Of a DNA stretch of 64,000 nt, positions 5,928 through 19,857 are shown one piece after another. The number at the start of each line of letters is the position of its first letter. Position 1 is the first letter of the stretch. The stretch lies in sequence record OR805293.1; one strand, given 5' to 3'. The position numbers and the translations under genes are program-made. A model generated the notes under the pieces. That model saw nothing but the letters and a program-made list of their open reading frames with translations. It had not been told where the DNA came from and searched no databases.

Positions 5928-6770
5928 ATGAATACAAAAATTGTAGTTAATTATATTAATAATAAAGAAATGTTAAAGGAAATACATCGTAGTAAAAATT
6001 CATTCTGCGAATATATTTCCCCAAAGTATAAAGATTACGATATTATCTTTACTTCAAAAGAAGACTGTCTGAAACAAGAAAATATAAACGCAGCAATACT
6101 TAAACGAGCAGAGCGTTTAACTCAAGTACAGATAGATGAATATGCATTAAGAACAAATACTAGTTCTAAAAAAGCAAAAGCATCTATAACCCAAGTAGAT
6201 CCTGCAACAATAAATAAACATGATGTTGTTTTTCGTGTTATCACATACGAACATATTCCAGAAGATCATGATAGGAAAAAGACAAAAAAATCAATTAAAG
6301 ACTATCATGTTAAGTTAAATTTTACTCCTTTTAAGCATTTTATTATAGACGAAAATAATAACTTAGTAGAAGTAGGCAGAAGTCACAGCAAAAAAGGAGA
6401 GTTTTGCTTAACTGGAGGATCTATATCAGATAGATTAGCAAAAATGTTTATGTTGTTAATTGACAAATTCGGTCAAAAAAGCAACTGGCGTGGATATTCA
6501 TATCTAGATGAAATGAAGGGACAAGCTTTACTTCAGTTAGCGTCTATGGGGTTGCAATTCGACGAACATTTAAGCGATAATCCCTTTGCATATTACACTT
6601 CGTCTATAAACAATTCTTTTACTAGGGTATTCAACATAGAAAAACGTAATCAAATAATCAGGGACGATTTATTACAAAATATGGGACAAAATCCTAGCCT
6701 TACTAGACAATTAGAACACGATGAGCAAATTCGGTTGCTCAGAGAATTAAATGATTCTAAAGATGATTAA
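5928..6770 (+). CDS. gp55: Late transcription sigma factor (gp55-like), long N-terminal extension
   Basis: YINNKEML at N-terminus; NWRGYSYLDEMKGQALLQL...NPFAYYTSSINNSF motif; adjacent to gp47/gp46 as in T4-like phages. Confidence 0.85.
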   Translation: MNTKIVVNYINNKEMLKEIHRSKNSFCEYISPKYKDYDIIFTSKEDCLKQENINAAILKRAERLTQVQIDEYALRTNTSSKKAKASITQVDPATINKHDVVFRVITYEHIPEDHDRKKTKKSIKDYHVKLNFTPFKHFIIDENNNLVEVGRSHSKKGEFCLTGGSISDRLAKMFMLLIDKFGQKSNWRGYSYLDEMKGQALLQLASMGLQFDEHLSDNPFAYYTSSINNSFTRVFNIEKRNQIIRDDLLQNMGQNPSLTRQLEHDEQIRLLRELNDSKDD

Positions 6771-6781
6771 AAGGATTTAAA

Positions 6782-7795
6782 GTGGGTAATTTATTTAAGA
6801 AAGTTGCATGTTTTAGTGATATTCACTTCGGATTGCATCATAACTCTAAAATTCACAATCAAGACTGTGAAGATTTCATTAAGTGGTTTTGTAAAACTGC
6901 TAAAGAAAAAAATGCAGAAACATGTATATTTTTAGGCGATTGGCATCATACAAGAAACACCATTAATGTATCTACACTAAACTACACTATGTCTAGTTTA
7001 GAACTACTAAACGATACGTTCGAAAAAGTATATTTTATCACTGGCAATCATGACCTTATGTATAGAGAAAAAAGAGAAGTACATTCTATTCCGATGGGTC
7101 ACAAATATCCTAATATAGTTATGATAGAAGATCCGTTCGAACAAGGTGATGTATCTATTCTACCGTGGTTAGTAGGAGATGAATGGAAAGACGTTCCTAA
7201 AATAAAAGCAAAATATTTGTTTGGGCATTTAGAAATTCCAGGATTTAAACTAAATGCAATGGTAGAAATGCCCGATGTAGGAGAAATAAAATCCGAACAT
7301 TTTGTTAATCAAACATATGTATTTTCTGGACATTTTCATAAGAGACAAGTAAATGGAAAAATTAATTATATCGGCAATCCATTTGGTCACAACTATTCTG
7401 ATGTATGGGATTTTGATAGGGGTGCAATGTTTTTAGAATGGGGAGGGGAACCTGAATATGTTAATTACGAAGACGGACCTAGATTCATATCCACTACATT
7501 GAAACAAATACTAGAAAATCCAGATTATTATCTTAAGCCAAAAACTCACGTAAAAGCAACTATAGATGTAGATATAACATACGAAGAAGCCAATTTCTTA
7601 CGTGAAACATTCTTGTCTTCATATAAAGTTAGAGAATTTAAATTATTACAGTCTAAATATAGCGAACACGAAATAGAAAGTGATACTGAAACTGAATTCG
7701 AAACTGTAGATGAAATTGTTATTTCCGAACTAACTAATATTCAAAGTGATAACTTTGATAAAAACATACTTATAAGCATTTACACAAACCTATAA
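6782..7795 (+). CDS. gp47: Recombination endonuclease (gp47/SbcD/Mre11)
   Basis: Metallophosphoesterase motifs DIHFG, GDWHH, GNHD, GHFH. Confidence 0.95.
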   Translation: MGNLFKKVACFSDIHFGLHHNSKIHNQDCEDFIKWFCKTAKEKNAETCIFLGDWHHTRNTINVSTLNYTMSSLELLNDTFEKVYFITGNHDLMYREKREVHSIPMGHKYPNIVMIEDPFEQGDVSILPWLVGDEWKDVPKIKAKYLFGHLEIPGFKLNAMVEMPDVGEIKSEHFVNQTYVFSGHFHKRQVNGKINYIGNPFGHNYSDVWDFDRGAMFLEWGGEPEYVNYEDGPRFISTTLKQILENPDYYLKPKTHVKATIDVDITYEEANFLRETFLSSYKVREFKLLQSKYSEHEIESDTETEFETVDEIVISELTNIQSDNFDKNILISIYTNL

Positions 7796-9549
7796 TGTTA
7801 AAATTTAAATCTATATCAATGCGAAATTTTATGTCTGTCGGTAATAATACACAGACTATATTGCTAGACGAAAACGATCTAACATTAGTTTTAGGAGAAA
7901 ATTTAGATCTCGGTGGCAATGACAGTAAAAACGGAACCGGTAAGACTGCAAAATTAAATGCACTTTCATACGCACTCTTTGGTACAGCATTAACTAATAT
8001 AAGAAAAGAAAATCTAATTAATAAAACAAATGAAAAAAATATGTATGTTAAATTAGAATTTTCGTTGAATAATAAAGAGTACAAAATAGAAAGGGGAAGA
8101 AAACCCAATATATTTAAAGTTATAATCAACAACAAAGAATTAGAAACAGACGAAACTGACGAAGCGCAAGGCGACAGCAGACAAACACAACTTGCATTAG
8201 AAAAGGAATTAGGTTTTAGTCATAATATGTTTAAAAACATAATTGCACTAAACACTTATTCCACTCCTTTTCTCTCTATGAAAACTACCGAACAAAGAGA
8301 ATTAATAGAACAACTGCTAGGCATAACTAAACTAAGTGAAAAAGCAGATATTCTAAAAAATTTAGTTAAAGATACTAAAGATAGAATTAAAGAAGAAGAA
8401 TTTAGAATTAAAGCAATCCAAGAAGCAAATAAAAGCATAGAACAAAACATTGCTTCTATGGAACTTAGAAGCAAAGCCTGGGATAAAAGACATTTAGATA
8501 CTTTACAAGAATACAGAGAATCGCTAGAGCATCTAAATAAAATAGATATAGATACTGAAATAGAAATGCATAAAATTTTAAAAGAGATTTCTATTAAAGA
8601 AAGAGAAAAAAATGATATTTTAAAAGAATATAATATTGTAGAACGAGAAATACAATCATTATCTACAACAGTATCTCACCTTTCGTCACAATTACTAAAA
8701 ACTACAGAACACAACGAATGTCCTACATGCGGGCAAGAATTAAATGATAGTCATACTTCATTAACTGAATCTTTAAAATTAAAGTTAGAATCTGCAACTA
8801 ATTCACTTAAAGAAAAAGAAAATGAAAAAGAATTAATTTTAAATACATTGAATTCTATTTTTATACCGGAAAAACCATCTACGTTTTATTCGTCTTTAGA
8901 TGATGTTTATAATCATAAAACTATGATTAATACACTAGAGCATTCTATAGAAAAAGAAGAAATGCTAACTAACCCTCACGTAGAAAATGTTTCTATTTTA
9001 CGGGATAGTATAAAACAAGTCGATTTCGAAACTATTAATACGTTAGTTTCGCTGCGAGATCATCAAGAATTTTTATTAAAACTGCTAACCTCAAAAGATA
9101 GTTTTATAAGAAAAAAGATTATAGATCAAAATTTATCGTATCTAAATACAAGACTTGCACACTACTTAATAAAAATAGGATTGCCACACGAAGTAAAATT
9201 TATGTCTGACCTAGAAGTTCAGATTACAGAACACGGCAGAGAATTAGATTTTGATAATTTAAGTAGAGGTGAACGCACCCGTTTAATTCTTTCACTAAGT
9301 TGGGCATTTAGAGATGTATTTGAAAGTCTTAACTATAAAATAAATCTGCTGTATATAGACGAATTAATAGACAATGGATTAGATACTAGAGGTGTAGAAT
9401 CTGCTCTAAGCATTCTAAAACAAATGTCAAGGGATTCTAGCAGAAAAGTATTTTTAGTGTCACACAGAGAAGAATTAATTGGACGAGTTGATGTTCAACT
9501 AAAAGCAGTAAAAGAAGGTGGATTTACTTCTTATACAATCGAAGGATAA
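7795..9549 (+). CDS. gp46: Recombination ATPase (gp46/SbcC/Rad50)
   Basis: Walker A NGTGKT, zinc hook CPTCG, signature LSRGE, Walker B LLYIDE. Confidence 0.95.
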   Translation: MLKFKSISMRNFMSVGNNTQTILLDENDLTLVLGENLDLGGNDSKNGTGKTAKLNALSYALFGTALTNIRKENLINKTNEKNMYVKLEFSLNNKEYKIERGRKPNIFKVIINNKELETDETDEAQGDSRQTQLALEKELGFSHNMFKNIIALNTYSTPFLSMKTTEQRELIEQLLGITKLSEKADILKNLVKDTKDRIKEEEFRIKAIQEANKSIEQNIASMELRSKAWDKRHLDTLQEYRESLEHLNKIDIDTEIEMHKILKEISIKEREKNDILKEYNIVEREIQSLSTTVSHLSSQLLKTTEHNECPTCGQELNDSHTSLTESLKLKLESATNSLKEKENEKELILNTLNSIFIPEKPSTFYSSLDDVYNHKTMINTLEHSIEKEEMLTNPHVENVSILRDSIKQVDFETINTLVSLRDHQEFLLKLLTSKDSFIRKKIIDQNLSYLNTRLAHYLIKIGLPHEVKFMSDLEVQITEHGRELDFDNLSRGERTRLILSLSWAFRDVFESLNYKINLLYIDELIDNGLDTRGVESALSILKQMSRDSSRKVFLVSHREELIGRVDVQLKAVKEGGFTSYTIEG

Positions 9550-9550
9550 T

Positions 9551-9576
9551 AAAAAAGAGGCTTAAGCCTCTTTTTT
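9551..9576. terminator. Bidirectional intrinsic terminator
   Basis: AAAAAAGAGGC-TTAA-GCCTCTTTTTT between convergent genes. Confidence 0.85.
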
Positions 9577-10311
9577 ATTAGTTTCTATTTTTGCTTTATC
9601 TAGTTGCTGTTTACTAATATATTTCACATTAATTGTTATATTTTTGTTATCTTTTGCTTTAGTTAACCTATGAGCACCGTCTATTACATATAGTTTACCG
9701 TTGTCTTTATACACTATTATAGGGATGCTCACATCGGCAGCTTTTACTCTCGACGGCGCTAATTTGGTATATCGTAATATCCATGTTAAGTCTTTTATTT
9801 TAACACTTTCTACAGGAGCATGCTCTGTACTTCTAAAAATATCATCTAATCTATATTCATTACCATTATGCGTTAATGTACTATGTTTACCTTCTGTATA
9901 AGATTCAGAAATAGTATTAATGTTGTTGCCTATGTTAGATATTCTTGTTAAACTAGATTCAGTATCAGAAGCTATTATGTCTCTACTATCTCCTGATCCT
10001 TTAAAATCGTAAACAATTATTCTTACTACATTAGGGAATATAGAAGATTTATTTACTTTAAGTCTTTTTATACGGTTACCCTGGTTGTCGTATAATGTTT
10101 CGTCAATTATATTAATATTAAAAGATTTTGCTAAATCCTTTGCAGTAATACCTACCTCTGCGGGTGATTCTCTAGAATATCTAGCCCTATTATCTATTAC
10201 TAACTCAGTATTGTTAAAAAATGGATATTTATTCAATACATTGTTTAGTATTTTTTTAAATTTTGTATCTATAGGCTTAAACGGTAAAATCTCGCCTTCT
10301 ATAAATCTCAT
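9562..10311 (-). CDS. ParB/Srx-like domain protein
   Basis: C-terminal PIIVYKDNGKLYVIDGAHRL motif. Confidence 0.7.
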   Translation of the reverse strand: MRFIEGEILPFKPIDTKFKKILNNVLNKYPFFNNTELVIDNRARYSRESPAEVGITAKDLAKSFNINIIDETLYDNQGNRIKRLKVNKSSIFPNVVRIIVYDFKGSGDSRDIIASDTESSLTRISNIGNNINTISESYTEGKHSTLTHNGNEYRLDDIFRSTEHAPVESVKIKDLTWILRYTKLAPSRVKAADVSIPIIVYKDNGKLYVIDGAHRLTKAKDNKNITINVKYISKQQLDKAKIETNKKEA

Positions 10312-10313
10312 TA

Positions 10314-10811
10314 TTATTTACTCAGCTGTTTTACTTTCTCTTTATTCTCTTCTGTCCAGAAATTATTCCAGCTACAGAATACCCAACCCTTGTAATCTAT
10401 ACTATTATTTACTTTAATCCCGGTTTTTTCTTCAAATACTACCCATTTGCCTTGCCGCGTTATTTTTATAAAAATAATATTAAAATCACCTTCGCTAGCA
10501 GTATCACGTACCTGTGATATCCATGTATCTAATTGTTTGCACTCCCCCTCGAACAACGAAGTAAATGAAAATTTTGCATACGATTTACATTCAGAATTAA
10601 AATGTTCCCATGTATCTGGAGGGAAAATATCACCTTTATAGGATTTGATTTGATTATTGCCTAGTGATGTTTTTCTGACAGAATTTTGTCCTCCTATAAA
10701 GGCACCTGAATGTGCTGTTCTAGTAAAGGGTTCGTTGTAAAATGAGGTAAGATCTTTTGCTACATCTCGTTCCCAGCTACTACCTTTAATTTTACTTTTC
10801 GATCCAGACAT
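10314..10811 (-). CDS. Holliday junction resolvase-like PD-(D/E)XK nuclease
   Basis: SKIKGSSWERDVAKDL...GDIF...ECKSY pattern of Hjc-like phage resolvases. Confidence 0.8.
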   Translation of the reverse strand: MSGSKSKIKGSSWERDVAKDLTSFYNEPFTRTAHSGAFIGGQNSVRKTSLGNNQIKSYKGDIFPPDTWEHFNSECKSYAKFSFTSLFEGECKQLDTWISQVRDTASEGDFNIIFIKITRQGKWVVFEEKTGIKVNNSIDYKGWVFCSWNNFWTEENKEKVKQLSK

Positions 10812-10885
10812 GTTTTGTTAACCTTTTATATACCTGTTAAATTTTACATTATTTAGTTAATTTTATACCCATATAATACTGTCGA

Positions 10886-10893
10886 GATAAATA
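10886..10893 (+). promoter_or_regulatory. Putative late promoter GATAAATA
   Basis: Octamer points into the ORF-free structured region. Confidence 0.55.
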
Positions 10894-10942
10894 TGTGTGT
10901 AGATAACTTATAGCATTATTTTTAACGATTTTAGTACAATGG

Positions 10943-10971
10943 TTGACAGTATTAATATCGTATGCTATAAT
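10943..10971 (+). promoter_or_regulatory. Consensus sigma70 promoter with extended -10
   Basis: TTGACA-17 nt-TATAAT with TG at -15/-14; no ORF downstream for 1.35 kb. Confidence 0.9.
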
Positions 10972-10977
10972 CCGCAA

Positions 10978-11883
10978 CATAATAAAACTAAAGGGCGTAT
11001 GTAACAAAACAGACGTTCTCCTAAGTGTTTTAAAGTTTTTGCTTAGGAAGACCCAGTTGTATGTTTAAAGGGTGAACGGTAACGGGCATTCTTGTTTAAG
11101 ACTAGTTCTTATGAAGACATTGGCAACTAACATAGCAGCTTTGTTCCATCATTGGATATTGGTAGTAGAAACTATCCCCATCGTGCCTTTACTGTAGTAC
11201 CGTTAGAGACGGAGATAACGCAGGAAAAAAGGTTATTTAAATTATGATTTTGGGTGCTGCAGAACACTTTCGTAAACAAAAGGAATATAGTTTACGTATA
11301 CACAACGGGAACGGGAAAAAGCTTTTTAAGCAAAAACGAGTCCCTGGTAATTGGTGTTTAACGGGAGTGACGTCCCAAATGTTATTCATTGATTAACACT
11401 GTAAGAAGGTTGTAAGGGTTATTGTGTTCGAAGTGGTTTACACAACTGTTCTTCCTACATTTATGTACAGAAGTGTAAACGAAAGGATGTTGCTCTGGTA
11501 GAAAAAGATCAACGTACTTTATGACACTATCCTTGTGACATATGTACTTGTACCAACAACAGCCGCAGGTTACGGATATGGTATTACAAACTGTACTGCG
11601 GTTCCGGGAGTTGAAAGTGGATGTTAGCTTAGGTGGCTGTTTGCTTAATTATAATGTTTAATTTAGGCAATATAAGCGTCGGGTGAGGCTTTCGTAGGTT
11701 GCGTGTTTATGCTACGGTGTAAATGGGCTAGACTACTGGCGCATACATGAGTATTGTAGGATTGGCGCTTTAATAAAGAAATTTGTTAAAGTTTGAGTTT
11801 AGCTCCCCGCTCATTAGCAATAAACGTTGCTAGTCGATAGTATACCCACGCCTAAATAATGCCGTCATTGTTTAGTTTTTTTT
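10978..11883 (+). ncRNA. Candidate large (~900 nt) structured non-coding RNA
   Basis: Promoter and terminator bound an ORF-free, GC-elevated region with many helices, G-U pairs favouring the + strand and a terminal helix 10993-10998/11848-11853. Confidence 0.7.
11855..11883 (+). terminator. Putative terminator of the ncRNA
   Basis: AAATAATG-CCGT-CATTGTTT stem then AG and T8. Confidence 0.5.
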
Positions 11884-11888
11884 AAAAA

Positions 11889-12173
11889 ATATAATTGTCA
11901 ATTATATGTCGTACGCATCTACCCCGAAAAGGGGTAGATGTTTATGACTTTCGTTTACACTCATGTCATAATCAGTACACGCCATTTTAGGCCATTCTAC
12001 ATCAATACACTGCTTCTAGCAGTGTATTGGACATACAAAATAATCTTAAATTATATCAAATTTGTTTAATTACTTTAATTTTGTTACTTTAGTAACTTGT
12101 ATTTTGTTTATATGAGTTGTAGTTTACGAAAACGAATATAAACAAAATACATATGTGAACTGTAGTTCACATA
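11889..12173. repeat. Cluster of perfect inverted repeats
   Basis: Stems 11889-96/11900-07 (8 bp), 11916-25/11931-40 (10), 12003-13/12019-29 (11), 12098-113/12136-151 (16), 12152-60/12165-73 (9). Confidence 0.85.
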
Positions 12174-12285
12174 CTTACTAACGTTGTATATTACGGTAAT
12201 TCTATAAAATATCTCTATATAATTATAAACGTTTTATGGCATACTACGACTGAACGAAATTGAAAATTAACTAGAGATTTAATTA

Positions 12286-12293
12286 GATAAATA
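12286..12293 (+). promoter_or_regulatory. Putative late promoter GATAAATA
   Basis: Octamer 33 nt upstream of ORF 12326. Confidence 0.6.
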
Positions 12294-12325
12294 ATATTGT
12301 AAAAATTGTATAGAGGTATACATCA

Positions 12326-12778
12326 ATGAACGATTACACACATTACACAGAGGAAGATTTCATATTTTTAGCATATGATTTAAATACTCAGCTTATAAAT
12401 GATGGATATCCTGACGCTGCTGTAAAATTTATTACTAATCAGTTTATTTTAGAGCATAGACATCCTGACGAAATAAAACGTTGTATAGGATGTAATTCTA
12501 AAATGTACGAAGATGTTATTGCTACTAAGAGAAATTTATCTGGTAAATCGCATTGCAGACATTGCGAATCGAAACTTAGTATGTATAAGGAAGTTGTTAA
12601 GGAAGTAGCAAATACAACACAAATACTTCGCATACCAGAAAAACATTTAAATTCAGTTAAACGATTAATTAGAATATATAATGAGCAAAACAAAACTAGT
12701 GCATATCAGAGTATATTAGTTAAAACAAAGAAACTTAACACAGGAGTTTCTAAAAAGTCAAAAAGAAAGGGACGTTAA
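12326..12778 (+). CDS. Hypothetical protein with CxxC...CxxC zinc ribbon and basic tail
   Basis: RBS GAGGT; CIGC and CRHC pairs; K/R-rich C-terminus. Confidence 0.75.
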   Translation: MNDYTHYTEEDFIFLAYDLNTQLINDGYPDAAVKFITNQFILEHRHPDEIKRCIGCNSKMYEDVIATKRNLSGKSHCRHCESKLSMYKEVVKEVANTTQILRIPEKHLNSVKRLIRIYNEQNKTSAYQSILVKTKKLNTGVSKKSKRKGR

Positions 12779-12794
12779 TTGTCCCTTTCTTTTT
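12761..12794. terminator. Bidirectional terminator
   Basis: AAAAGAAAGGGAC/GTCCCTTTCTTTT 13-bp stem between convergent genes. Confidence 0.85.
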
Positions 12795-13014
12795 ATAGGA
12801 AGCTTCTACCTGTTTCTGCTTCGATTTTTTGTTTAATAAATTCTCCTAACCGTACCCGCTCTTGATATGATAAAGACCAAGCAGTGTGCCAGTCAAATCC
12901 ATTAATTTTATCACATATTTGGACTATTTCGCCTTCTAATCCCAGTGATTCTTGTTCATATTCTTGTATAACGTTCCTAATATCATCTGGGGTTCCCGAT
13001 ACTAGGATTCTCTG
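12793..13014 (-). CDS. gp51/gpT-like tail-assembly chaperone segment, probably expressed by -1 frameshift from the upstream ORF
   Basis: 73-codon frame QRILVSG...FDWHTAWSLSYQERVRLGEFIKQKIEAETGRSFL* with no ATG/GTG/TTG start; overlaps end of gp26-like ORF in the -1 frame. Confidence 0.75.
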   Translation of the reverse strand, partial: QRILVSGTPDDIRNVIQEYEQESLGLEGEIVQICDKINGFDWHTAWSLSYQERVRLGEFIKQKIEAETGRSFL

Positions 13015-13020
13015 AAAAAA
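12975..13020 (-). promoter_or_regulatory. Programmed -1 ribosomal frameshift signal
   Basis: U UUU UUC heptamer (13020-13014), 6-nt spacer, 10-bp stem UCCUAGUAUC/GAUAUUAGGA (13007-12975). Confidence 0.75.
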
Positions 13021-13856
13021 CTTACTGGGTTAAAATCTACAGGTACTACAAAACTTTTATTACAGTTGTCGCATACTGCATCAAAGTCGCCATTAACTCC
13101 TACTTGATTTATTTCTTTTAAAAGACTATCTATTTTATTAACATCTGCTCTATCTATATTTGCTATAAATTCTTTTATATCAGCCAGTGTCTGAGGAGTA
13201 TTATTAACTATATCTATACCGTTAGTTTCATCTACAATACGAACTATTGTTTTTGCAATTAATTCGAAATTTAATGATGACAGTTCATTTATTGTGTTAG
13301 AAAATGCAGAAAGTTTTTCTTCATCTGAATACATATCGCTTTGCATTATTCTAATAAATTTTGCTTGTTCTAATGCAGTTTTTGCAACTGTCATATTATC
13401 TGAAAAATCATATGGTCTAATAAATATAGATAGACCGTTATCGAGGTTCACGACGTATTGATCTTCTAAATAAGTGGACGTATTAATAACATTTAATAAG
13501 TCTATTCCATATAAATTTTTATGATTACAATGCGGGCACGTAGAAGAAATATCTATTGTGTTACCGTATGATGCTGCTTTTATAGCAACACATATCATAT
13601 GAATGTCATTAATTAAGAGTTTATTTACATCTTTAATTCCCGGTACACAACTCTTAATTACTTCTTTTAAGCCTTCACCGTTCACTAATGCATCAGGATT
13701 TTTTATTAATACTTCATCTTTTCCTGTCATAGCATATACCCCTAGTTCTCCGGAATCGGTGTATTCTACAACATTTGATGGATAAAATGAATTTCCGCTG
13801 GGCAAACGAATATAAGATTTGAATGTTCTGTAATATTGATGTAATTTGTTGCTCAT
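13002..13856 (-). CDS. gp26: Baseplate hub / tail assembly chaperone (T4 gp26-like)
   Basis: IRLPSG..FY, MTGKDEVLIK, STCPHCNH and AVCDNCNK zinc motifs, terminal FF; divergent from tape measure. Confidence 0.75.
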   Translation of the reverse strand: MSNKLHQYYRTFKSYIRLPSGNSFYPSNVVEYTDSGELGVYAMTGKDEVLIKNPDALVNGEGLKEVIKSCVPGIKDVNKLLINDIHMICVAIKAASYGNTIDISSTCPHCNHKNLYGIDLLNVINTSTYLEDQYVVNLDNGLSIFIRPYDFSDNMTVAKTALEQAKFIRIMQSDMYSDEEKLSAFSNTINELSSLNFELIAKTIVRIVDETNGIDIVNNTPQTLADIKEFIANIDRADVNKIDSLLKEINQVGVNGDFDAVCDNCNKSFVVPVDFNPVSFFRES

Positions 13857-13875
13857 AATGTGTATATGCTCTTTT

Positions 13876-13903
13876 GATAAATATGCTATATACCGTATTT
13901 ATC
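13876..13903. promoter_or_regulatory. Face-to-face pair of late promoters
   Basis: GATAAATA on + (13876-83) and on - (13896-903), 12 nt apart. Confidence 0.7.
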
Positions 13904-13925
13904 ATAGCATTTTATAGAGGTTCTT

Positions 13926-16322
13926 GTGGCAGAAGATATTAGAATTGTTGGCGTTGATCCTAGTGTCCCTGGCTGGGCTCGAGAAGAAACTCTTAATAAA
14001 ATAGTATCTGAGTTAAAAAAACTCAATGGATCTAATACAAGAGAAAACGACGAACTAAAAGATGCAGTAGATGAACTAGTTAGGGTAACCCGTAGATCTA
14101 ACGAAGATACATCTAGAACAGATAATAACACTGAAATAAAAGAAGCATTAAATAGATTATCTTCTTCGTTAAAACAACAGAAAAAATCTGATAATTCTTT
14201 ATCTGCAAAGCAAGGGGGAAACAAACCTCCCGTATTGCCGCCTGACAATAAGAAATCTAAATTAGATACAGATACTATAGGCGCATTTATTACTGCCGTC
14301 GGTACTGCTTCAAAGGCAGTAGCAAAATTTACTTTAAGTATGGCATCTTTTGCAGTTGGCGGAAGTATATATGCTGCATTAAAGCAAGCTGCATCGTCGC
14401 AACTTACTTTATCTAGAGATTTATATAAATCAGGTTGGAACTTCGGAACGGTATTAGACGATGCATCTGGTATTATTAAATCTACCAACTTAGACGGTAT
14501 TTCGTATGCCATAAAAGGTTTAGGTATAAATTCATCTGCACTATCTGAAGTATTAAAAGGCAATGAATTAGCAATACAAAAATACGGAATAAAATCGTTT
14601 GTAGATTTGTCTTCTAGCTTAAAAAGACAAGGCAATAGCTTAGGTATGTCTTTAAAAGAAACAGCAGATTATGTAGGAGAATATTTAGAATCTCAACGTT
14701 TAATGGGTACATTTGATAAAATGCGCCAAGTAAACATGACTGCCCTTGCATCTAAAGCACTTAAAGATACCCAAGCATTTGCTACTGCGTTAAGAATGTC
14801 TACAGAAGACCTACAGGCAAAAATGAATGAAAGTTTAAAAGATGTAGACTTTCGTGTAGCAATAGAATCAGTTAACGCAAATTCTAAAGAAGCCGCTGCC
14901 CAAATTTATGCTGCTTTGCCAGAACAATTGCAAACTATGTTTAAGGTAGCTCTTAAAGATACTCCGTCTTTTATGGCATCTAAAGAATACGCTGATTTGA
15001 TAAAATCCGGGCAAGGAGAATTAGCTAGACAAATAATTGCAGTATCATCTGGACTGAAATCTGGTAATATAACTAACGGTCAGGCAGATGATGCAATGAA
15101 ACGACTTATAAAATCTACTAGTTTTGCAGAAAGTACAATGCGTAGACTTGCTATGCTAGATGCTCGTGGACTAATAGATAGTAATGTTGCTGCTGCTGCG
15201 TATGGATTAAAAGACCTTAGAGATAAAATGGATGGTCATTATGAAGGAATCCAAAATACAGAAGCTACAAATTTAGCAAAAGTCGAAGATGTAAGAAATA
15301 GAGCATTAGCTGTATTAGATACGTTTGTATCATCTATAATGAGAGCAGGATTCGAATCTGATGAATTTGCTAAATTATTAGATAATGCAAATGAAATGTT
15401 AAAAACAATTCATAATACAGCAGAAGACTTAGGTAAACAACTAGGTCCGGAATTATTTAAATTTGTTAACAATGCTATGGAATATCTAAATGGTTTATTT
15501 AGTAAAGATGTAGCAGGAAATATAAATGTAAATTATTCTAAAATAATAGGAGATATTTTAACAAGTTCCGGTGCTGCTATAGTAGTTGGCGTTCTTGCTA
15601 TTATGACTACATTTAAAGGTGTTGTTATTTCTTCGTTATCGTCGTGGCTTAAAGGTGCATCAGGACCTATGTCATCATTGGGCGGCACAGTAAAAACTAT
15701 AGCAGGAAGATTAGGGGCATTTGCAGCACTAGCAGTATCGTTTACGAATGGAATAGGTAGATTAAGTCAATCAATTTCGGAAGGCGGCGATGCAATAGAA
15801 TCTGCATTGAATTTTTTATCGGGCGCAGGCGAAGGTATAATAGATCCCGTGTTTAAATCCCTTACATGGGCAGCTAACAAATTAGGTATAGTATCTGATG
15901 AAGCAGCAGATGGATTTAGTAAATACATCAGTGATACTAATTTGCAACAGTTCTTGGGTCTACAAGATATACCTATAAAAGTAGAAACTACTAATAAACC
16001 TGCATATACACCACCTGGACCTACTGCTACTAAAACATCTGCATACGGTAAAATAGAAACTCCGAAAGCTCCTGCTATAATCCCTACAGCTCAGCCAGAT
16101 GTAGCAGACGCAGCAAAACAAAGTCCTACTCCTGTAGATCCTACTAGCAATATAAAGCCTATAGAAAATACAGGAATGAGTTCTCAAGACATGCTAAATA
16201 GAAGTACAGATAAACTTATACGTTTACAAGAAGAACAAATACGACAGTTACAAGAGCTTGTAGATATTCAGCGCAGAGCATTAGCTGCTACTAGAGAAAC
16301 TGGATTTACAAGAACTAGGTAA
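13926..16322 (+). CDS. Tape measure protein-like
   Basis: Long Ala/Gly-rich helical protein with hydrophobic segments, next to tail chaperone gene. Confidence 0.65.
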   Translation: MAEDIRIVGVDPSVPGWAREETLNKIVSELKKLNGSNTRENDELKDAVDELVRVTRRSNEDTSRTDNNTEIKEALNRLSSSLKQQKKSDNSLSAKQGGNKPPVLPPDNKKSKLDTDTIGAFITAVGTASKAVAKFTLSMASFAVGGSIYAALKQAASSQLTLSRDLYKSGWNFGTVLDDASGIIKSTNLDGISYAIKGLGINSSALSEVLKGNELAIQKYGIKSFVDLSSSLKRQGNSLGMSLKETADYVGEYLESQRLMGTFDKMRQVNMTALASKALKDTQAFATALRMSTEDLQAKMNESLKDVDFRVAIESVNANSKEAAAQIYAALPEQLQTMFKVALKDTPSFMASKEYADLIKSGQGELARQIIAVSSGLKSGNITNGQADDAMKRLIKSTSFAESTMRRLAMLDARGLIDSNVAAAAYGLKDLRDKMDGHYEGIQNTEATNLAKVEDVRNRALAVLDTFVSSIMRAGFESDEFAKLLDNANEMLKTIHNTAEDLGKQLGPELFKFVNNAMEYLNGLFSKDVAGNINVNYSKIIGDILTSSGAAIVVGVLAIMTTFKGVVISSLSSWLKGASGPMSSLGGTVKTIAGRLGAFAALAVSFTNGIGRLSQSISEGGDAIESALNFLSGAGEGIIDPVFKSLTWAANKLGIVSDEAADGFSKYISDTNLQQFLGLQDIPIKVETTNKPAYTPPGPTATKTSAYGKIETPKAPAIIPTAQPDVADAAKQSPTPVDPTSNIKPIENTGMSSQDMLNRSTDKLIRLQEEQIRQLQELVDIQRRALAATRETGFTRTR

Positions 16323-16351
16323 TAAACACAATATATATTGAGATAGAGTAC

Positions 16352-18067
16352 ATGTCTAGTTGGAAAAAACATTTTAAGCCTGCATCAAATTCAGCGCTGC
16401 CTATACAAACTAAAAATACATCTGGTTATGCTTCTGCTGTTTCAAAATATAACACATGGCTTCCTGAAGTTTATATGGGTCCGCCTAATAGATTGGAGCG
16501 GTACATTCAATATGAACAAATGGATCTAGATCACGAAGTAAACACTGCATTAGATACTATAGCAGAGTTTTCCACACAACCAGACGGTGTAACCGGGTTG
16601 CCATTAAATATAAAATTTACAGAAGAACCTACTGAAACAGAATTAAAAATTTTAACAAAAAGCTTAAAAAGATGGATACATCTTAATAAGTTTGAAGATA
16701 GGCTTTTCGGTATTTTTAGATCTACAATAATGTATGGAGATCAATTCTTTATAAGAGATCCGGAAACTTACGAATTATATTGGGTAGACCCGCACAAAGT
16801 AGAAAAAATAATTGTTAACGAAAGTAAAGGAAAAGAAATAGAGACCTATTTCATTAAAGATGTCGATTTAAATACTGCAGAGTTAGTAGGATCTAATGTA
16901 ACTAATAAAATACAAATAGGATACGGAAACACAGCATCTGCTTTCCCCCAAGCAACTATGGGAATAAATCCTGCAGGACCATACGCATCTGCAAATAATC
17001 CTAGTCAGAATGGCTCGTTAGCTAACAGCGAAGCTATGCCGATAAATGCAAAGCATATAGTTCATTTTTCTATGACGGAAGGTATGAATTCTGCGTGGCC
17101 ATTTGGTACTAGTGAATTAGAAACTATATTTAAAGTATATAAGCAAAAAGAAATGCTTGAAGATGCAATGCTTATATATAGAATTCATCGCGCACCAGAA
17201 AGACGTGTGTTCATTATTGACACAGGTAACTTACCTCCTAACAAAGCTCAGCAAGTGTTAGAGCGCGTTAAATATGAAGTACAACAAAAAAGGATTCCTA
17301 ATAAAACTGGCGGCGGAAGTAATATTCTAGACTCGTCATATAACCCTCTTTCTACTCTTGAAGATTATTATTTTGCTCAGTCAGCAGACGGCAGAGGATC
17401 GAAAGTAGATGTTTTACCGGGAGGTTCTAATCTAGGCGAAATAGATGATATGCGTTATTTTAATAATAAAATGATGCGTGCGTTAGGAGTTCCTAGTTCG
17501 TATCTGCCTACAGGACCTGATGATGGTACAGCAGGGTATAATGACGGAAGAGTAGGAACTGCATATATACAAGAATTTAGATTTAGTGAAAGATGCAAAA
17601 GACATCAACGTCAAATAGTAAAAACATTAGATAAAGAATTTAAACTATATCTTAAGTTTAGTGGTATTACTATAGACAATAGTATATTCAATATAACATT
17701 TGTAGAGCCACAAAATTTTGCTAAATATCGACAAATAGATATGGATTCTGCTCAAGTTGCAGTTTTCAATGGGATTGCTGATGTCCCCTACATAAGTAAG
17801 CGGTTTGCATTAAAACGTTATTTAGGTTGGGGAGAAGCTGAAATTCTAGAAAACGAAAAGATGTATGCAGAAGAACAGAGTCTTAAAAACAAACGTGGTA
17901 AAAAAGCTGATGCTGGTATGAGGCAAGTGGGTATTTCGCCAGCAGCGCTAGCTGGTGTCGGGGAGTTTGATACTAGTGCAGTTAGTGATAGTTCTGACTT
18001 CGGTGATGACGATATAGTCGATGATATCGATTTAGATCAAACAGTAGAAGACTTTGGGAAAGAATAA
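16352..18067 (+). CDS. gp20: Portal protein
   Basis: EDAMLIYRIHRAPERRVFIIDTGNLPPNKA; EDYYFAQ...RGSKVDVLPGG; IDDMRYFNNK. Confidence 0.97.
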   Translation: MSSWKKHFKPASNSALPIQTKNTSGYASAVSKYNTWLPEVYMGPPNRLERYIQYEQMDLDHEVNTALDTIAEFSTQPDGVTGLPLNIKFTEEPTETELKILTKSLKRWIHLNKFEDRLFGIFRSTIMYGDQFFIRDPETYELYWVDPHKVEKIIVNESKGKEIETYFIKDVDLNTAELVGSNVTNKIQIGYGNTASAFPQATMGINPAGPYASANNPSQNGSLANSEAMPINAKHIVHFSMTEGMNSAWPFGTSELETIFKVYKQKEMLEDAMLIYRIHRAPERRVFIIDTGNLPPNKAQQVLERVKYEVQQKRIPNKTGGGSNILDSSYNPLSTLEDYYFAQSADGRGSKVDVLPGGSNLGEIDDMRYFNNKMMRALGVPSSYLPTGPDDGTAGYNDGRVGTAYIQEFRFSERCKRHQRQIVKTLDKEFKLYLKFSGITIDNSIFNITFVEPQNFAKYRQIDMDSAQVAVFNGIADVPYISKRFALKRYLGWGEAEILENEKMYAEEQSLKNKRGKKADAGMRQVGISPAALAGVGEFDTSAVSDSSDFGDDDIVDDIDLDQTVEDFGKE

Positions 18068-18288
18068 TGAAAATAAACGATATTATAACAGAAGGTTATT
18101 ATAATCCTGCAGACGATTCTAGTGCAATTGCACATAAGTCAGACACACGTAGACCTAGACTAACATTTTCTCATTTAAATAAGCTTAGAAAAATGAGAGA
18201 ATTGCGTAAAGTAGAAACAGAAGAACATTTAGTGTTAGTTAGACAAATGTATAGCCAACCGATACAATCGGACGATGCATTTGGATAA
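18067..18288 (+). CDS. Small prohead-associated protein
   Basis: Coupled to portal; RRPRLTFSHLNKLRKMRE; position of T4 gp67/68. Confidence 0.65.
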   Translation: MKINDIITEGYYNPADDSSAIAHKSDTRRPRLTFSHLNKLRKMRELRKVETEEHLVLVRQMYSQPIQSDDAFG

Positions 18289-18311
18289 AATTTCTAAAAA
18301 TGTTAGTTTTT

Positions 18312-18333
18312 GGGGCATAAATGCCCCTTTTTT
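18312..18333 (+). terminator. Intrinsic terminator
   Basis: GGGGCAT/ATGCCCC followed by T6. Confidence 0.75.
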
Positions 18334-18354
18334 AATATTAAGTGTAAATACCGA

Positions 18355-18362
18355 TATAAATA
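18355..18362 (+). promoter_or_regulatory. Late promoter TATAAATA
   Basis: Exact T4 late consensus upstream of prohead operon. Confidence 0.75.
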
Positions 18363-18393
18363 ATATACAACGTTTTCCTAAAGGAGTAAAAAC

Positions 18394-19206
18394 ATGTCTC
18401 ATCGTAAGGAACTAGAAAAAGTTCTAGATCTTCTACTAAATGAAAATGCAGAACAAGCTTCGGCTTTATTACATCAAATTGTTGTAGCTAAAGCTCGTGA
18501 TATTTACGAACAAGAATCTGCAGATTTTGAAGAAGATTTTGTAAATGAAGAAGTAGGTGGCGACAGCCGCGAATCGTTTATTGACGACATTAAATCTGAC
18601 GAAGAAGAAATTGATGCAGATGAAATGTTTGATGATCAGTCTAGCGAATTAAATTCTGAAGATGAAGAAGAAGCTGATGCTGATCAAGATATAGAAGATA
18701 AAGTAGAAGATCTAGAAGCTCAATTAGCTGCATTAAAAGCAGAATTTGAAACTCTAGTAAGTCAAGAGGAAGATGAACCGTATCATCCTAATTTAGAACA
18801 AGATTTAGATGATGCTGCTGCTGATGCCTTAGAAAAATTTGAAAGTTTAGAAGAAGCAACTAAGTTTAGTGATTCTGTAAACGTAGATATGAAACAAGAA
18901 GGTAAATTAGCAGGAACAGGTAATAAAAGTAAAACTGGTTCTGTAGATAAAGAATCACCTTTTAGTAAACCTACTCAAAAGAAAAATTACGGAGTAGATC
19001 CTGTCAAATTTGCTAAATCTACTAATCAAGGCGCTGAAGCTTCAAAAAAAGCAGACGAATCGTGTGATTTGAATACAGAAGCTACTCCTGAAAAAGTTAG
19101 CGATCCTGCAATGAAACAAGAAGGTAAATTAGCAGGAACAGGTAATAAAAGTAAAACTGGTTCTGTAGATAAAGAATCACCCCTATCTAAAGCACCTAAG
19201 AAGTAA
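18394..19206 (+). CDS. Acidic prohead core/scaffold-like protein
   Basis: Very acidic; RBS AGGAG; directly upstream of prohead protease. Confidence 0.7.
   Translation: MSHRKELEKVLDLLLNENAEQASALLHQIVVAKARDIYEQESADFEEDFVNEEVGGDSRESFIDDIKSDEEEIDADEMFDDQSSELNSEDEEEADADQDIEDKVEDLEAQLAALKAEFETLVSQEEDEPYHPNLEQDLDDAAADALEKFESLEEATKFSDSVNVDMKQEGKLAGTGNKSKTGSVDKESPFSKPTQKKNYGVDPVKFAKSTNQGAEASKKADESCDLNTEATPEKVSDPAMKQEGKLAGTGNKSKTGSVDKESPLSKAPKK
18889..19181 (+). repeat. Perfect 71-bp direct repeat, two copies (18889-18959, 19111-19181)
   Basis: Both encode MKQEGKLAGTGNKSKTGSVDKES(P) with identical codons. Confidence 0.9.
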
Positions 19207-19224
19207 TTTAGGATAAGTATAAGT

Positions 19225-19857
19225 ATGGCTAGACAGCTTTACGAATATATGTCCCAATCTAAGGGATCGATAATAATAGAACACGGCACCGGACCTGACG
19301 GTGCCCGTGATCTATTTATGCGCGGAATATTTATTCAAGGTGATGTAAAAAATCATAATCAGCGCATCTATCCCCTACATGAAATATCTCATGCAGTTGA
19401 ATCAGTAAAAGCAAAAATACAGGAAGGGTTTTCTGTTTTAGGAGAACTCGATCATCCAGAAGAATTAACTATTAATTTAGACAGAGTGTCTCATATAATC
19501 ACAGAAATGTGGATGGAAGGCAACTGCGGCTACGGCAAATTAAAATTATTAGATACTCCTACTGGAATTATTGCTAAAAGCTTATTAACTGCCGGAGCCA
19601 AATTGGGCGTAAGTTCTCGCGGCTCAGGTAATGTAGGTTATGACGGTGTAGTGAGCGACTTTGATATTGTAACAGTTGACATTGTTGCACAACCGAGCGC
19701 GCCTAATGCATATCCTAAACCTATATATGAAAGTTTATACAACATGAAAGGCGGCGAAATCATTATGGATTTAGCCCGTAACACACCACAGGATCCTAGT
19801 GCAGATAAATATCTCAGTAGGGAAATAATAAAACTTATATCCGAATTGAAAAAATAG
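19225..19857 (+). CDS. gp21: Prohead core protease
   Basis: KNHNQRIYP, LGELDHPE, LGVSSRGSG, DIVAQPSAPNA motifs. Confidence 0.95.
   Translation: MARQLYEYMSQSKGSIIIEHGTGPDGARDLFMRGIFIQGDVKNHNQRIYPLHEISHAVESVKAKIQEGFSVLGELDHPEELTINLDRVSHIITEMWMEGNCGYGKLKLLDTPTGIIAKSLLTAGAKLGVSSRGSGNVGYDGVVSDFDIVTVDIVAQPSAPNAYPKPIYESLYNMKGGEIIMDLARNTPQDPSADKYLSREIIKLISELKK

Follow-up and report, generated by a model that had tools for sequence, protein, structure and literature searches.

The window analysed in this work, a stretch of 64,000 nucleotides (nt) from sequence record OR805293.1, carries on its minus strand a gene for a protein of 284 amino acids (aa) resembling gp26 of phage T4 and, overlapping the 3′ end of this gene in the -1 frame, an open reading frame (ORF) devoid of a start codon of its own. 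The 1.2-kb stretch spanning the overlap is 100% identical to Pseudomonas phage Deifobo and shares 98.4-99.7% identity with ten further records from the PA5oct group, jumbo myophages of 284-288 kb (Wroclawvirus). The original prediction, made from the letters of this DNA, was that the two frames are joined by programmed -1 ribosomal frameshifting (PRF) and that the resulting protein pair is the equivalent of gpG/gpGT of phage lambda.

The features of the locus are collected in Table 1. The ORF of the gp26-like protein (13856-13002) ends with the residues ..NPVSFFRES, and its two Phe codons are part of a slippery heptamer. The -1 frame, closed upstream by TAA at 13032-13030, opens three codons ahead of the two Phe codons and ends with TAA at 12795-12793; no ATG, GTG or TTG occurs among all of its 78 codons. 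The stem-loop that follows the heptamer holds a further 3-bp GGG/CCC stem in its 13-nt loop, has a minimum free energy (MFE) of -13.8 kcal/mol versus a mean of -6.75 for dinucleotide shuffles (z = -3.47; none of 200 shuffles was as stable) and is the most stable 45-nt window in the whole gene. A search of Rfam returned nothing relevant at the site. The predicted products are of 284 aa (31.7 kDa) and 354 aa (281 + 73; approximately 40 kDa), with the junction ..VSFF/QRILV..; tryptic digestion is predicted to yield SFVVPVDFNPVSFFQR from the junction and SFVVPVDFNPVSFFR from the 0-frame C-terminus. In all these respects (heptamer, 6-nt spacer, 10-bp stem, 73 start-less codons and sizes of both products) the description given in the original prediction was accurate.

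A putative intrinsic terminator, composed of a hairpin and a U-tract, starts exactly at the TAA that closes the -1 extension and not behind the 0-frame stop; it is therefore the extension, rather than the annotated stop, to which the transcription unit is fitted. The run of six T followed by C is identical in 11 genomes and in contigs from RNA libraries, and the contigs of four such libraries from a PA5oct-like infection traverse the site with no indel (the RNA data are assembled contigs of runs from 2020, in which rare variants and strand are not visible). The agreement between genomes and RNA contigs excludes a homopolymer sequencing error.

The 284-aa protein matches the family PF12322 (T4_baseplate) over residues 38-282 with an E-value of 3.2e-25 (89.5 bits, cut-off 24.5) and phrog_150 'baseplate hub' with an E-value of 3.9e-23; gp26 and gp51 of T4 match the same models. 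Its AlphaFold2 (AF2) model is of high confidence, with a predicted local distance difference test (pLDDT) score of 89.3 and a predicted template modelling (pTM) score of 0.83. Comparison of this model with the PDB by Foldseek gave nothing at E ≤ 0.001 (the HK97 chaperone 2ob9, of spiral fold, came at rank 45 with E 5.7 and TM scores of 0.18/0.40), a wide VIA-align search gave only generic helical hairpins with Z ≤ 7.5, and no solved structure of a relative was found by sequence. The protein contains two cysteine pairs, CPHC (107-110) and CDNC (262-265), which look like a zinc site. Non-cysteine residues occupy these positions in several family branches (P0047, P0083-P0086 and P0091) and in the tandem short copies described below; metal binding thus cannot be essential to the role of the fold.

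Table 1. Coordinates of features at the frameshift locus, in its surroundings and of the corresponding calls in relatives
Feature	Position	Strand	Basis or remark
gp26-like gene, 0 frame, 284 aa, 31.7 kDa	13002..13856	-	ORF list; PF12322
Slippery heptamer U_UUU_UUC	13014..13020	-	X_XXY_YYZ phase (AGT TTT TTC), tRNA-Phe in P and A sites
6-nt spacer AGAGAA, heptamer to stem	13008..13013	-	sequence and fold
Stem-loop, 10-bp stem (13007-12998/12984-12975) with one G-U pair	12975..13007	-	spans the 0-frame stop
0-frame stop TAG	13002..13004	-	3 codons past the heptamer
-1 extension, 73 codons and TAA	12793..13014	-	Gp51_C-like helical domain
Intrinsic terminator, 15-pair stem and T-run	12759..12795	-	terminator scan
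Probable tail tape measure protein, 798 aa	13926..16322	+	divergent neighbour, presumed client
T4-type portal protein gp20	16352..18067	+	PF07230 Portal_T4, E 1.7e-102
Truncated calls of the extension	L085 2367-2543; L086 2220-2429; L088 2358-2540; L089 2439-2633; L090 2325-2555; L091 2382-2540		

Conservation of the overlap and of the extension

Judged by its pattern of substitution and conservation, the -1 extension is a real protein domain under purifying selection. All three substitutions that separate it from PA5oct fall in third codon positions of the -1 frame, and its amino acid sequence is identical in 11 of 11 genomes. The domain is conserved across 76 sequences; 68 non-identical extensions align without large gaps and display the pattern FFRxxLLxLxxxEI ... 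CWYMRGGxSYxEAxxLSxxER ... NLETTKKxGLPFF; the conserved sequence starts at FFR, ahead of any candidate start codon. The AF2 model built from this alignment is confident (pLDDT 89.7) and consists of four helices. The local Pfam, PHROG and NCBIfam libraries gave no match to the extension, and tblastn against cultured phages recovered it from the PA5oct group alone, to which a consensus-like query added Phosso. An exhaustive profile search of 1.84 billion proteins returned 720 relatives at E ≤ 1e-3, most of them stand-alone calls of 55-100 aa with varied internal starts. One protein of 361 aa (P0095), considered as a candidate for a natural fusion of the two parts, was rejected since its C-terminus is an unrelated hydrophobic tail.

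The conservation of the whole layout was followed in related phages. A profile of 26 diverse homologues led to 80 IMG/VR loci with 28-41% identity, 77 of which could be scored. A slippery heptamer in phase, located 1-6 codons ahead of the stop, is present in all 77 (77/77). Apart from four loci (one longer, three shorter), the -1 frame continues for a further 68-76 codons before a stop, and the +1 frame is usually shut within a few codons. The 0-frame tail past the heptamer varies between 1 and 11 codons across the relatives and is unconserved. The same layout was found in eight cultured RaK2-like jumbo phages, namely Atu_ph07, CBB, 121Q, RaK2, Xoo-sp13, SCTP-2, Phosso and Munch. Most loci have T_TTT_TTC as the heptamer, often within AAATTTTTTC, which makes two overlapping heptamers; Xoo-sp13 has T_TTT_TTT, and in a small branch whose 0-frame product ends with ..NFS it is replaced by A_AAT_TTT (A_AAU_UUU). 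The joint conservation of the heptamer and the -1 overlap, on which the prediction could be checked, was thus borne out, and the comparison confirmed at the sequence level that the arrangement is far beyond chance.

The conservation reaches the synonymous positions. Of 72 distinct loci, all 72 have T as the last base of the codon ahead of the two Phe codons, all 72 use TTT for the first Phe, and 71 use TTC for the second. As the same genes use TTT for 73% of their Phe codons and T in 58-67% of the two-fold degenerate codons concerned, the heptamer would be expected with a frequency of about 0.12. The fixation of the wobble bases therefore indicates that the heptamer is held at the nucleotide level and not via the Phe residues alone.

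The RNA downstream of the site is unusually structured across the family: the 45 nt past the site have on average an MFE of -9.2 kcal/mol versus -5.3 for other windows of the same genes, and they lie in the top 5% of gene windows for 44% of 78 distinct loci. The register of the stem varies by subfamily, with the 5′ arm in alignment columns 14-23 in the window and in columns 11-20 in the group of locus L015, so that the structure is supported only per subfamily and statistically. For a subfamily of 24 sequences, 89.6% of the cells of a 10-bp stem pair, in comparison with 35-52% when the partner is slid, 26 cells have changed on both sides and none of 500 shuffles reaches the covariation score; the stem was derived from the same 24 sequences on which it was tested, which makes this comparison somewhat inflated.

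A single PF12322 locus per genome is present in 97 cultured records of the frameshift type and in the window. None of the GenBank records inspected (the PA5oct group and the eight cultured RaK2-like phages) annotates ribosomal slippage. Several of the cultured RaK2-like records list the extension as a separate, N-terminally truncated 'hypothetical protein' (phrog_18291), at the positions given in the last row of Table 1. The PA5oct-group records show no annotation for the 223 bases that separate the 'baseplate hub' gene from its neighbour, with the exception of PAC2, whose record has there a GTG-started ORF of 43 aa (XAI94002.1, window 12884-13015, plus strand) on the strand opposite to the extension. 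Since it is the minus strand that encodes the conserved -1 domain, this ORF is almost certainly spurious.

Long forms in frame and the gp26/gp51 pair of T4

Among the best 150 matches of the exhaustive search there were approximately 25 PF12322 proteins of 319-351 aa that carry the extension in frame at the C-terminus, with the junction ..LDxSxxFRxKLIxxxxEEI... Comparison of the frameshift extensions with these C-termini by hhalign gave an E-value of 2.5e-38 over 78 columns. The loci L096 and L098 and a 60-kb NCBI contig each contain two tandem PF12322 genes, the short one first (287 or 294 aa, lacking the extension) and the long one second (331 or 346 aa). The extension domain of the long copy in the uncultured T4-superfamily pairs of L096 and L098 is that of the frameshift extension; the pairs differ from the window in that the domain is encoded in frame within the second gene, where heptamer and hairpin are missing. 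The tandem pairs of L096 and the NCBI contig adjoin a gene for an 829-aa tape-measure-like protein, and the NCBI contig has in addition the T4-type portal gene, as in the window. The in-frame long genes have neither heptamer nor hairpin at the junction (MFE 0 to -1.5 kcal/mol) and so provide a naturally occurring negative control. The short copy of L098 (820-1704) ends with TCT TTT TTC AAT GAC TAA, i.e. with a heptamer in phase from which the -1 frame shuts after two codons, and this heptamer may be left over from an earlier frameshift site.

The gp26 (208 aa) and gp51 (249 aa) proteins of T4 both match PF12322 over the whole profile, with E-values of 9e-64 and 4e-52, respectively. When the two are aligned, gp26 ends with ..EFFELL exactly where gp51 (..DVFKLL) runs on for 46 residues. 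By hhalign the extension aligned with the gp51 tail over 60-61 columns with an E-value of 1.9e-5 and a probability of 78%, and with the in-frame forms added these values were 1.1e-5 and 82%; comparison of the whole proteins placed the match at the expected C-terminal position with an E-value of 1.9e-4. A plain hidden Markov model search of the extension against the T4 ORFs was not significant (E 0.4), so that the link to the T4 tail is made only by profile-profile comparison and through the intermediate in-frame forms. The homologues of gp51 carry a second Pfam family, PF28602 (Gp51_C in Pfam 38.1), and Gp51_C is also the best named neighbour of the extension in a protein-language-model atlas (score 0.92, 178 shared features). 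The label 'gp51-like', given originally to the start-less ORF, is in keeping with these results: gp26 and gp51 are both PF12322 proteins, the extension aligns with the tail by which gp51 is the longer, and the atlas leads to Gp51_C.

The explanation of the terminal Phe-Phe by the heptamer, also part of the original prediction, stands in one half only. The choice of codons speaks for it, but Phe is kept also where no frameshift is needed, as in T4 gp26 (..EFFELL) and at the in-frame junctions (..FRxK..). In T4 gp26, which has no heptamer, the two Phe codons are TTC TTT.

The T4 pair has in common with the window gene the PF12322 family, the logic of a short and a long form and the neighbourhood of hub and tape measure genes. 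The gene order in T4 is 26, in divergent orientation, followed by 51-27-28-29, so that the gene of the tape measure protein gp29, itself a component of the T4 hub, lies three genes downstream of 51. Both gp26 and gp51 have been listed as hub assembly chaperones; the same source states that assembly requires gp51, that the particle does not contain it and that its function is unknown (PMC3004832). T4 differs in having two separate, divergent paralogous genes with no heptamer; the tail of gp51 falls short of the extension by about 25 residues, and the shared body is about 70 residues shorter in the T4 proteins. A quick maximum likelihood tree, unrooted and with long branches, placed gp26 and gp51 of T4 together (SH-aLRT, the Shimodaira-Hasegawa-like approximate likelihood ratio test, 99) and nested the tandem short copies within the frameshift clade. 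Tentatively, these sequence relationships suggest that frameshifting has been replaced by two genes more than once.

Two predicted products of one gene

We consider it probable that a single gene (13856-12793, minus strand) gives rise by -1 PRF to two products, a gp26-like protein of 284 aa and a gp51-like protein of 354 aa, which would work on the hub or the tape measure in the manner of gpG/gpGT. The parts of this reading are not equally firm: on the sequence evidence it is very likely that the frameshift yields the two forms, and an action of the pair on the tape measure resembling that of lambda G/GT is plausible by analogy. The call of a programmed frameshift is strongly upheld by comparative evidence, i.e. 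the fixed synonymous sites of the heptamer, the conserved domain in the -1 frame and the in-frame fusions that lack heptamer and hairpin.

According to the proposed mechanism most ribosomes would keep the 0 frame and terminate at the TAG, releasing the 284-aa gp26-like baseplate hub assembly protein. A fraction of them would be delayed by the hairpin located 6 nt downstream of the heptamer and slip back by one base on U_UUU_UUC, with both tRNA-Phe re-pairing, and would then read 73 more codons; the 354-aa form would thus consist of the first 281 residues and a small helical C-terminal domain. We infer that slippage occurs and that it does so at a fixed, sub-stoichiometric ratio. The short form would be the counterpart of T4 gp26, and the long form, with PF12322 and Gp51_C, that of gp51; T4 and some uncultured lineages would make the pair from two paralogous genes, and PA5oct- and RaK2-like phages together with a large uncultured clade would make it by frameshifting. 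By analogy, the shared body may hold the tape measure or a hub precursor, the extra domain of the long form may recruit or position a second partner, and both forms may leave before the virion is finished.

The same arrangement might arise if the downstream ORF were translated alone, from a non-canonical start codon or by termination-reinitiation, into a protein of about 70 aa, the heptamer being a by-product of two conserved Phe residues. Such separate initiation has some appeal in 121Q, Phosso and Atu_ph07, where codon 4 or 5 of the extension is an ATG that shares bases with the 0-frame stop (TAATG or ATGA) and where coupled re-initiation could contribute, and it would agree with the small stand-alone ORFs that gene callers and GenBank report, that make up phrog_18291 and that form the majority of the exhaustive-search matches. 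These small ORFs, however, begin at differing internal points, and the conserved sequence is already under way from FFR on, ahead of every possible start codon. Initiation of this kind cannot apply to the window, where ATG, GTG and TTG are missing from all 78 codons, and many relatives have none in the first 30-50. Protein constraint fails to explain the wobble fixation seen in 71 of 72 loci, and in the in-frame lineages and in T4 gp51 the domain is covalently C-terminal to PF12322. We regard separate initiation as improbable.

A little less probable still is transcriptional slippage, in which RNA polymerase would stutter on the T6 run and add one U to some of the mRNAs, from which the long form would be made. 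A homopolymer does lie exactly at the junction of the frames, and RNA contigs are blind to rare indels. Productive transcriptional slippage usually needs 8-9 or more A/T, but the run comprises only six T, and five in one branch, which keeps the classical A_AAU_UUU in phase. The base behind the run is fixed as C, and the hairpin, which polymerase slippage would not need, is found at the spacing typical of PRF and covaries in one subfamily; no indel appears in the contigs of the four RNA libraries. That there is no second product at all, the -1 ORF being a decaying remnant, a chance open frame or a homopolymer error of sequencing or assembly, might be read from its being unannotated in 11 of 11 GenBank records of the PA5oct group and from the lack of a match to the extension in the local domain libraries, but is hardly credible in view of a T6C run shared by 11 independent genomes and the RNA contigs, a layout kept in over 80 loci whose proteins are 28-45% identical, purifying selection on an extension with 720 homologues that folds confidently, and a terminator placed behind it.

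The proposal of two products made by -1 PRF has several points to answer. The frameshift is predicted here from sequence, and the three phages with an ATG over the 0-frame stop leave room for the re-initiation mentioned above. RNAalifold on 79 aligned sites returned no pairs, i.e. no single family-wide stem register, and about one third of the loci show no unusual structure. The similarity of the extension to the gp51 tail is moderately significant, with probabilities of 47-82% across the comparisons. The analogy with G/GT is weakened by the gene being divergent from the tape-measure-like gene instead of lying upstream on the same strand. No tail assembly chaperone (TAC) family was found among the Pfam, PHROG and NCBIfam matches and no TAC fold was matched, although a weak or missing match is no proof of a different fold. 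A weak language-model hint that the extension belongs to the GpE family (PF06528) was rejected, as hhalign against P2 gpE gave an E-value of 0.53 and a probability of 0.1%. The presumed client, the 798-aa product of the divergent neighbour, is only probably a tail tape measure protein: it is a virion protein by its mass spectrometry (MS) tag in the PA5oct record, its RaK2 orthologue is annotated as similar to a tape measure protein, and the TMP_3 and PhageMin_Tail families are found among its language-model neighbours (0.94), but it has no Pfam or PHROG match.

Several features are shared with lambda gpG/gpGT, made by -1 PRF at G_GGA_AAG. In lambda, as is predicted here, slippage takes place a few codons before the short ORF ends, both products have the same N-terminal body, the longer one has an extra C-terminal domain, and the frameshift has persisted where the sequence itself has long diverged. 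The products of the window gene, like those of lambda, would be assembly factors and may be absent from the virion, and in both systems the gene adjoins a tape-measure or tape-measure-like gene. The window gene and more than 80 relatives show this lambda-type arrangement. The differences are that the protein belongs to the unrelated PF12322 family, has a body of 281 aa, often with a four-cysteine site, and a short extension of 73 aa, and that the gene does not lie between the tube and tape measure genes. The claim that the pair is the 'G/GT equivalent' is therefore retained as an analogy of logic and not as membership of that family, given the divergent orientation and the lack of a sequence or fold match to gpG or TAC. 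The contractile-tailed phage P2 provides a further parallel in gpE/gpE+E′, a short and a long tail assembly protein made by -1 PRF at T_TTT_TTG, a nearly identical U-rich heptamer in the same phase; gpE differs in its size of 91 aa and in being encoded directly upstream of the tape measure gene T.

A conserved 'G-T' frameshift of long-tailed phages was reportedly recognized by Xu, Hendrix and Duda in 2004. A later review describes it as conserved among long-tailed phages 'except T4' (PMC5009743). If gp26 and gp51 are the short and the long member of a pair of one fold, made by frameshifting in distant relatives, this exceptional status of T4 finds an explanation that can be tested: the two separate genes may be the reason why T4 looked like the sole long-tailed phage with no frameshift. 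A wider view, for which we would put the chances at about even, is that a short/long pair made by frameshifting is universal in long-tailed phages, and that the T4 superfamily evolved on the PF12322 fold a version of G/GT that is separate from and unrelated to the known one. Most of the superfamily, with the RaK2- and PA5oct-like jumbo phages and a very large uncultured clade, would make the pair by a -1 frameshift at U_UUU_UUC, and T4 and at least one other lineage would have exchanged the frameshift for duplication and subfunctionalisation, in which gp26 lost the extension and gp51 fixed it in frame. If this were true, gp26 and gp51 would be the long-sought tape measure chaperones of T4.

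The production of a longer tail assembly chaperone by -1 PRF is known; what seems new is the same trick in an unrelated protein family. In the full-text literature covered, which leaves most subscription journals aside, no paper was found to describe frameshifting for these genes, and the omics paper on PA5oct mentions neither slippage nor a tape measure protein. As regards annotation, the finding concerns about 95 genomes of cultured jumbo phages and metagenomic contigs in the hundreds, in which the extension is missing, cut down to a 'hypothetical protein' (phrog_18291) or hidden under a spurious ORF on the opposite strand; the RaK2-like records with truncated calls need a coding sequence with ribosomal slippage. 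Frameshift, tandem genes and divergent genes would serve the same need, and together they offer a natural experiment on the importance of a fixed ratio between the short and the long form. As the phages of the PA5oct group are candidates for therapy, their recoding or engineering must preserve the seven bases of the heptamer and the hairpin.

Neighbouring genes and minor observations

The gp26-like gene sits beside the 798-aa tape-measure-like virion protein and the T4-type portal, that is within a T4-type morphogenesis module, and the gene order of the window at the portal is repeated in the relatives L092 and L096. On its 3′ side lies a convergent hypothetical gene of 150 aa (12326-12778, plus strand), with no tube gene alongside. 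The gp26-like product of PA5oct, gp336, carries no MS tag, although the genes on both sides are tagged; this agrees with its absence from the virion but is negative evidence only.

In the RNA library X2 the summed depth of contigs reaches 6,000-19,600 at window positions 12367-12634, over the convergent 150-aa ORF, and is about 630 over the gp26-like gene. The high depth may come from an early or a short transcript present in very large amounts; as a measure of expression, depth of contigs is poor, and it carries no strand. The region of approximately 1.5 kb between 10850 and 12320 contains only tiny ORFs of 41-52 aa, inconsistently annotated between the records, and no tRNA or Rfam family was found in it. 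Further along, a gene of 249 aa (9562-10311, minus strand) is annotated as 'putative RNA polymerase beta prime subunit' in PAC2 versus 'structural protein (ESI-MS/MS)' in PA5oct.

In a contig of GCA_015689235.1 the portal gene beside the tape-measure-like gene encodes 1015 aa and has an intein (PF14890) between two Portal_T4 matches; a gene for a SegE-type GIY-YIG homing endonuclease lies a few genes from the portal.

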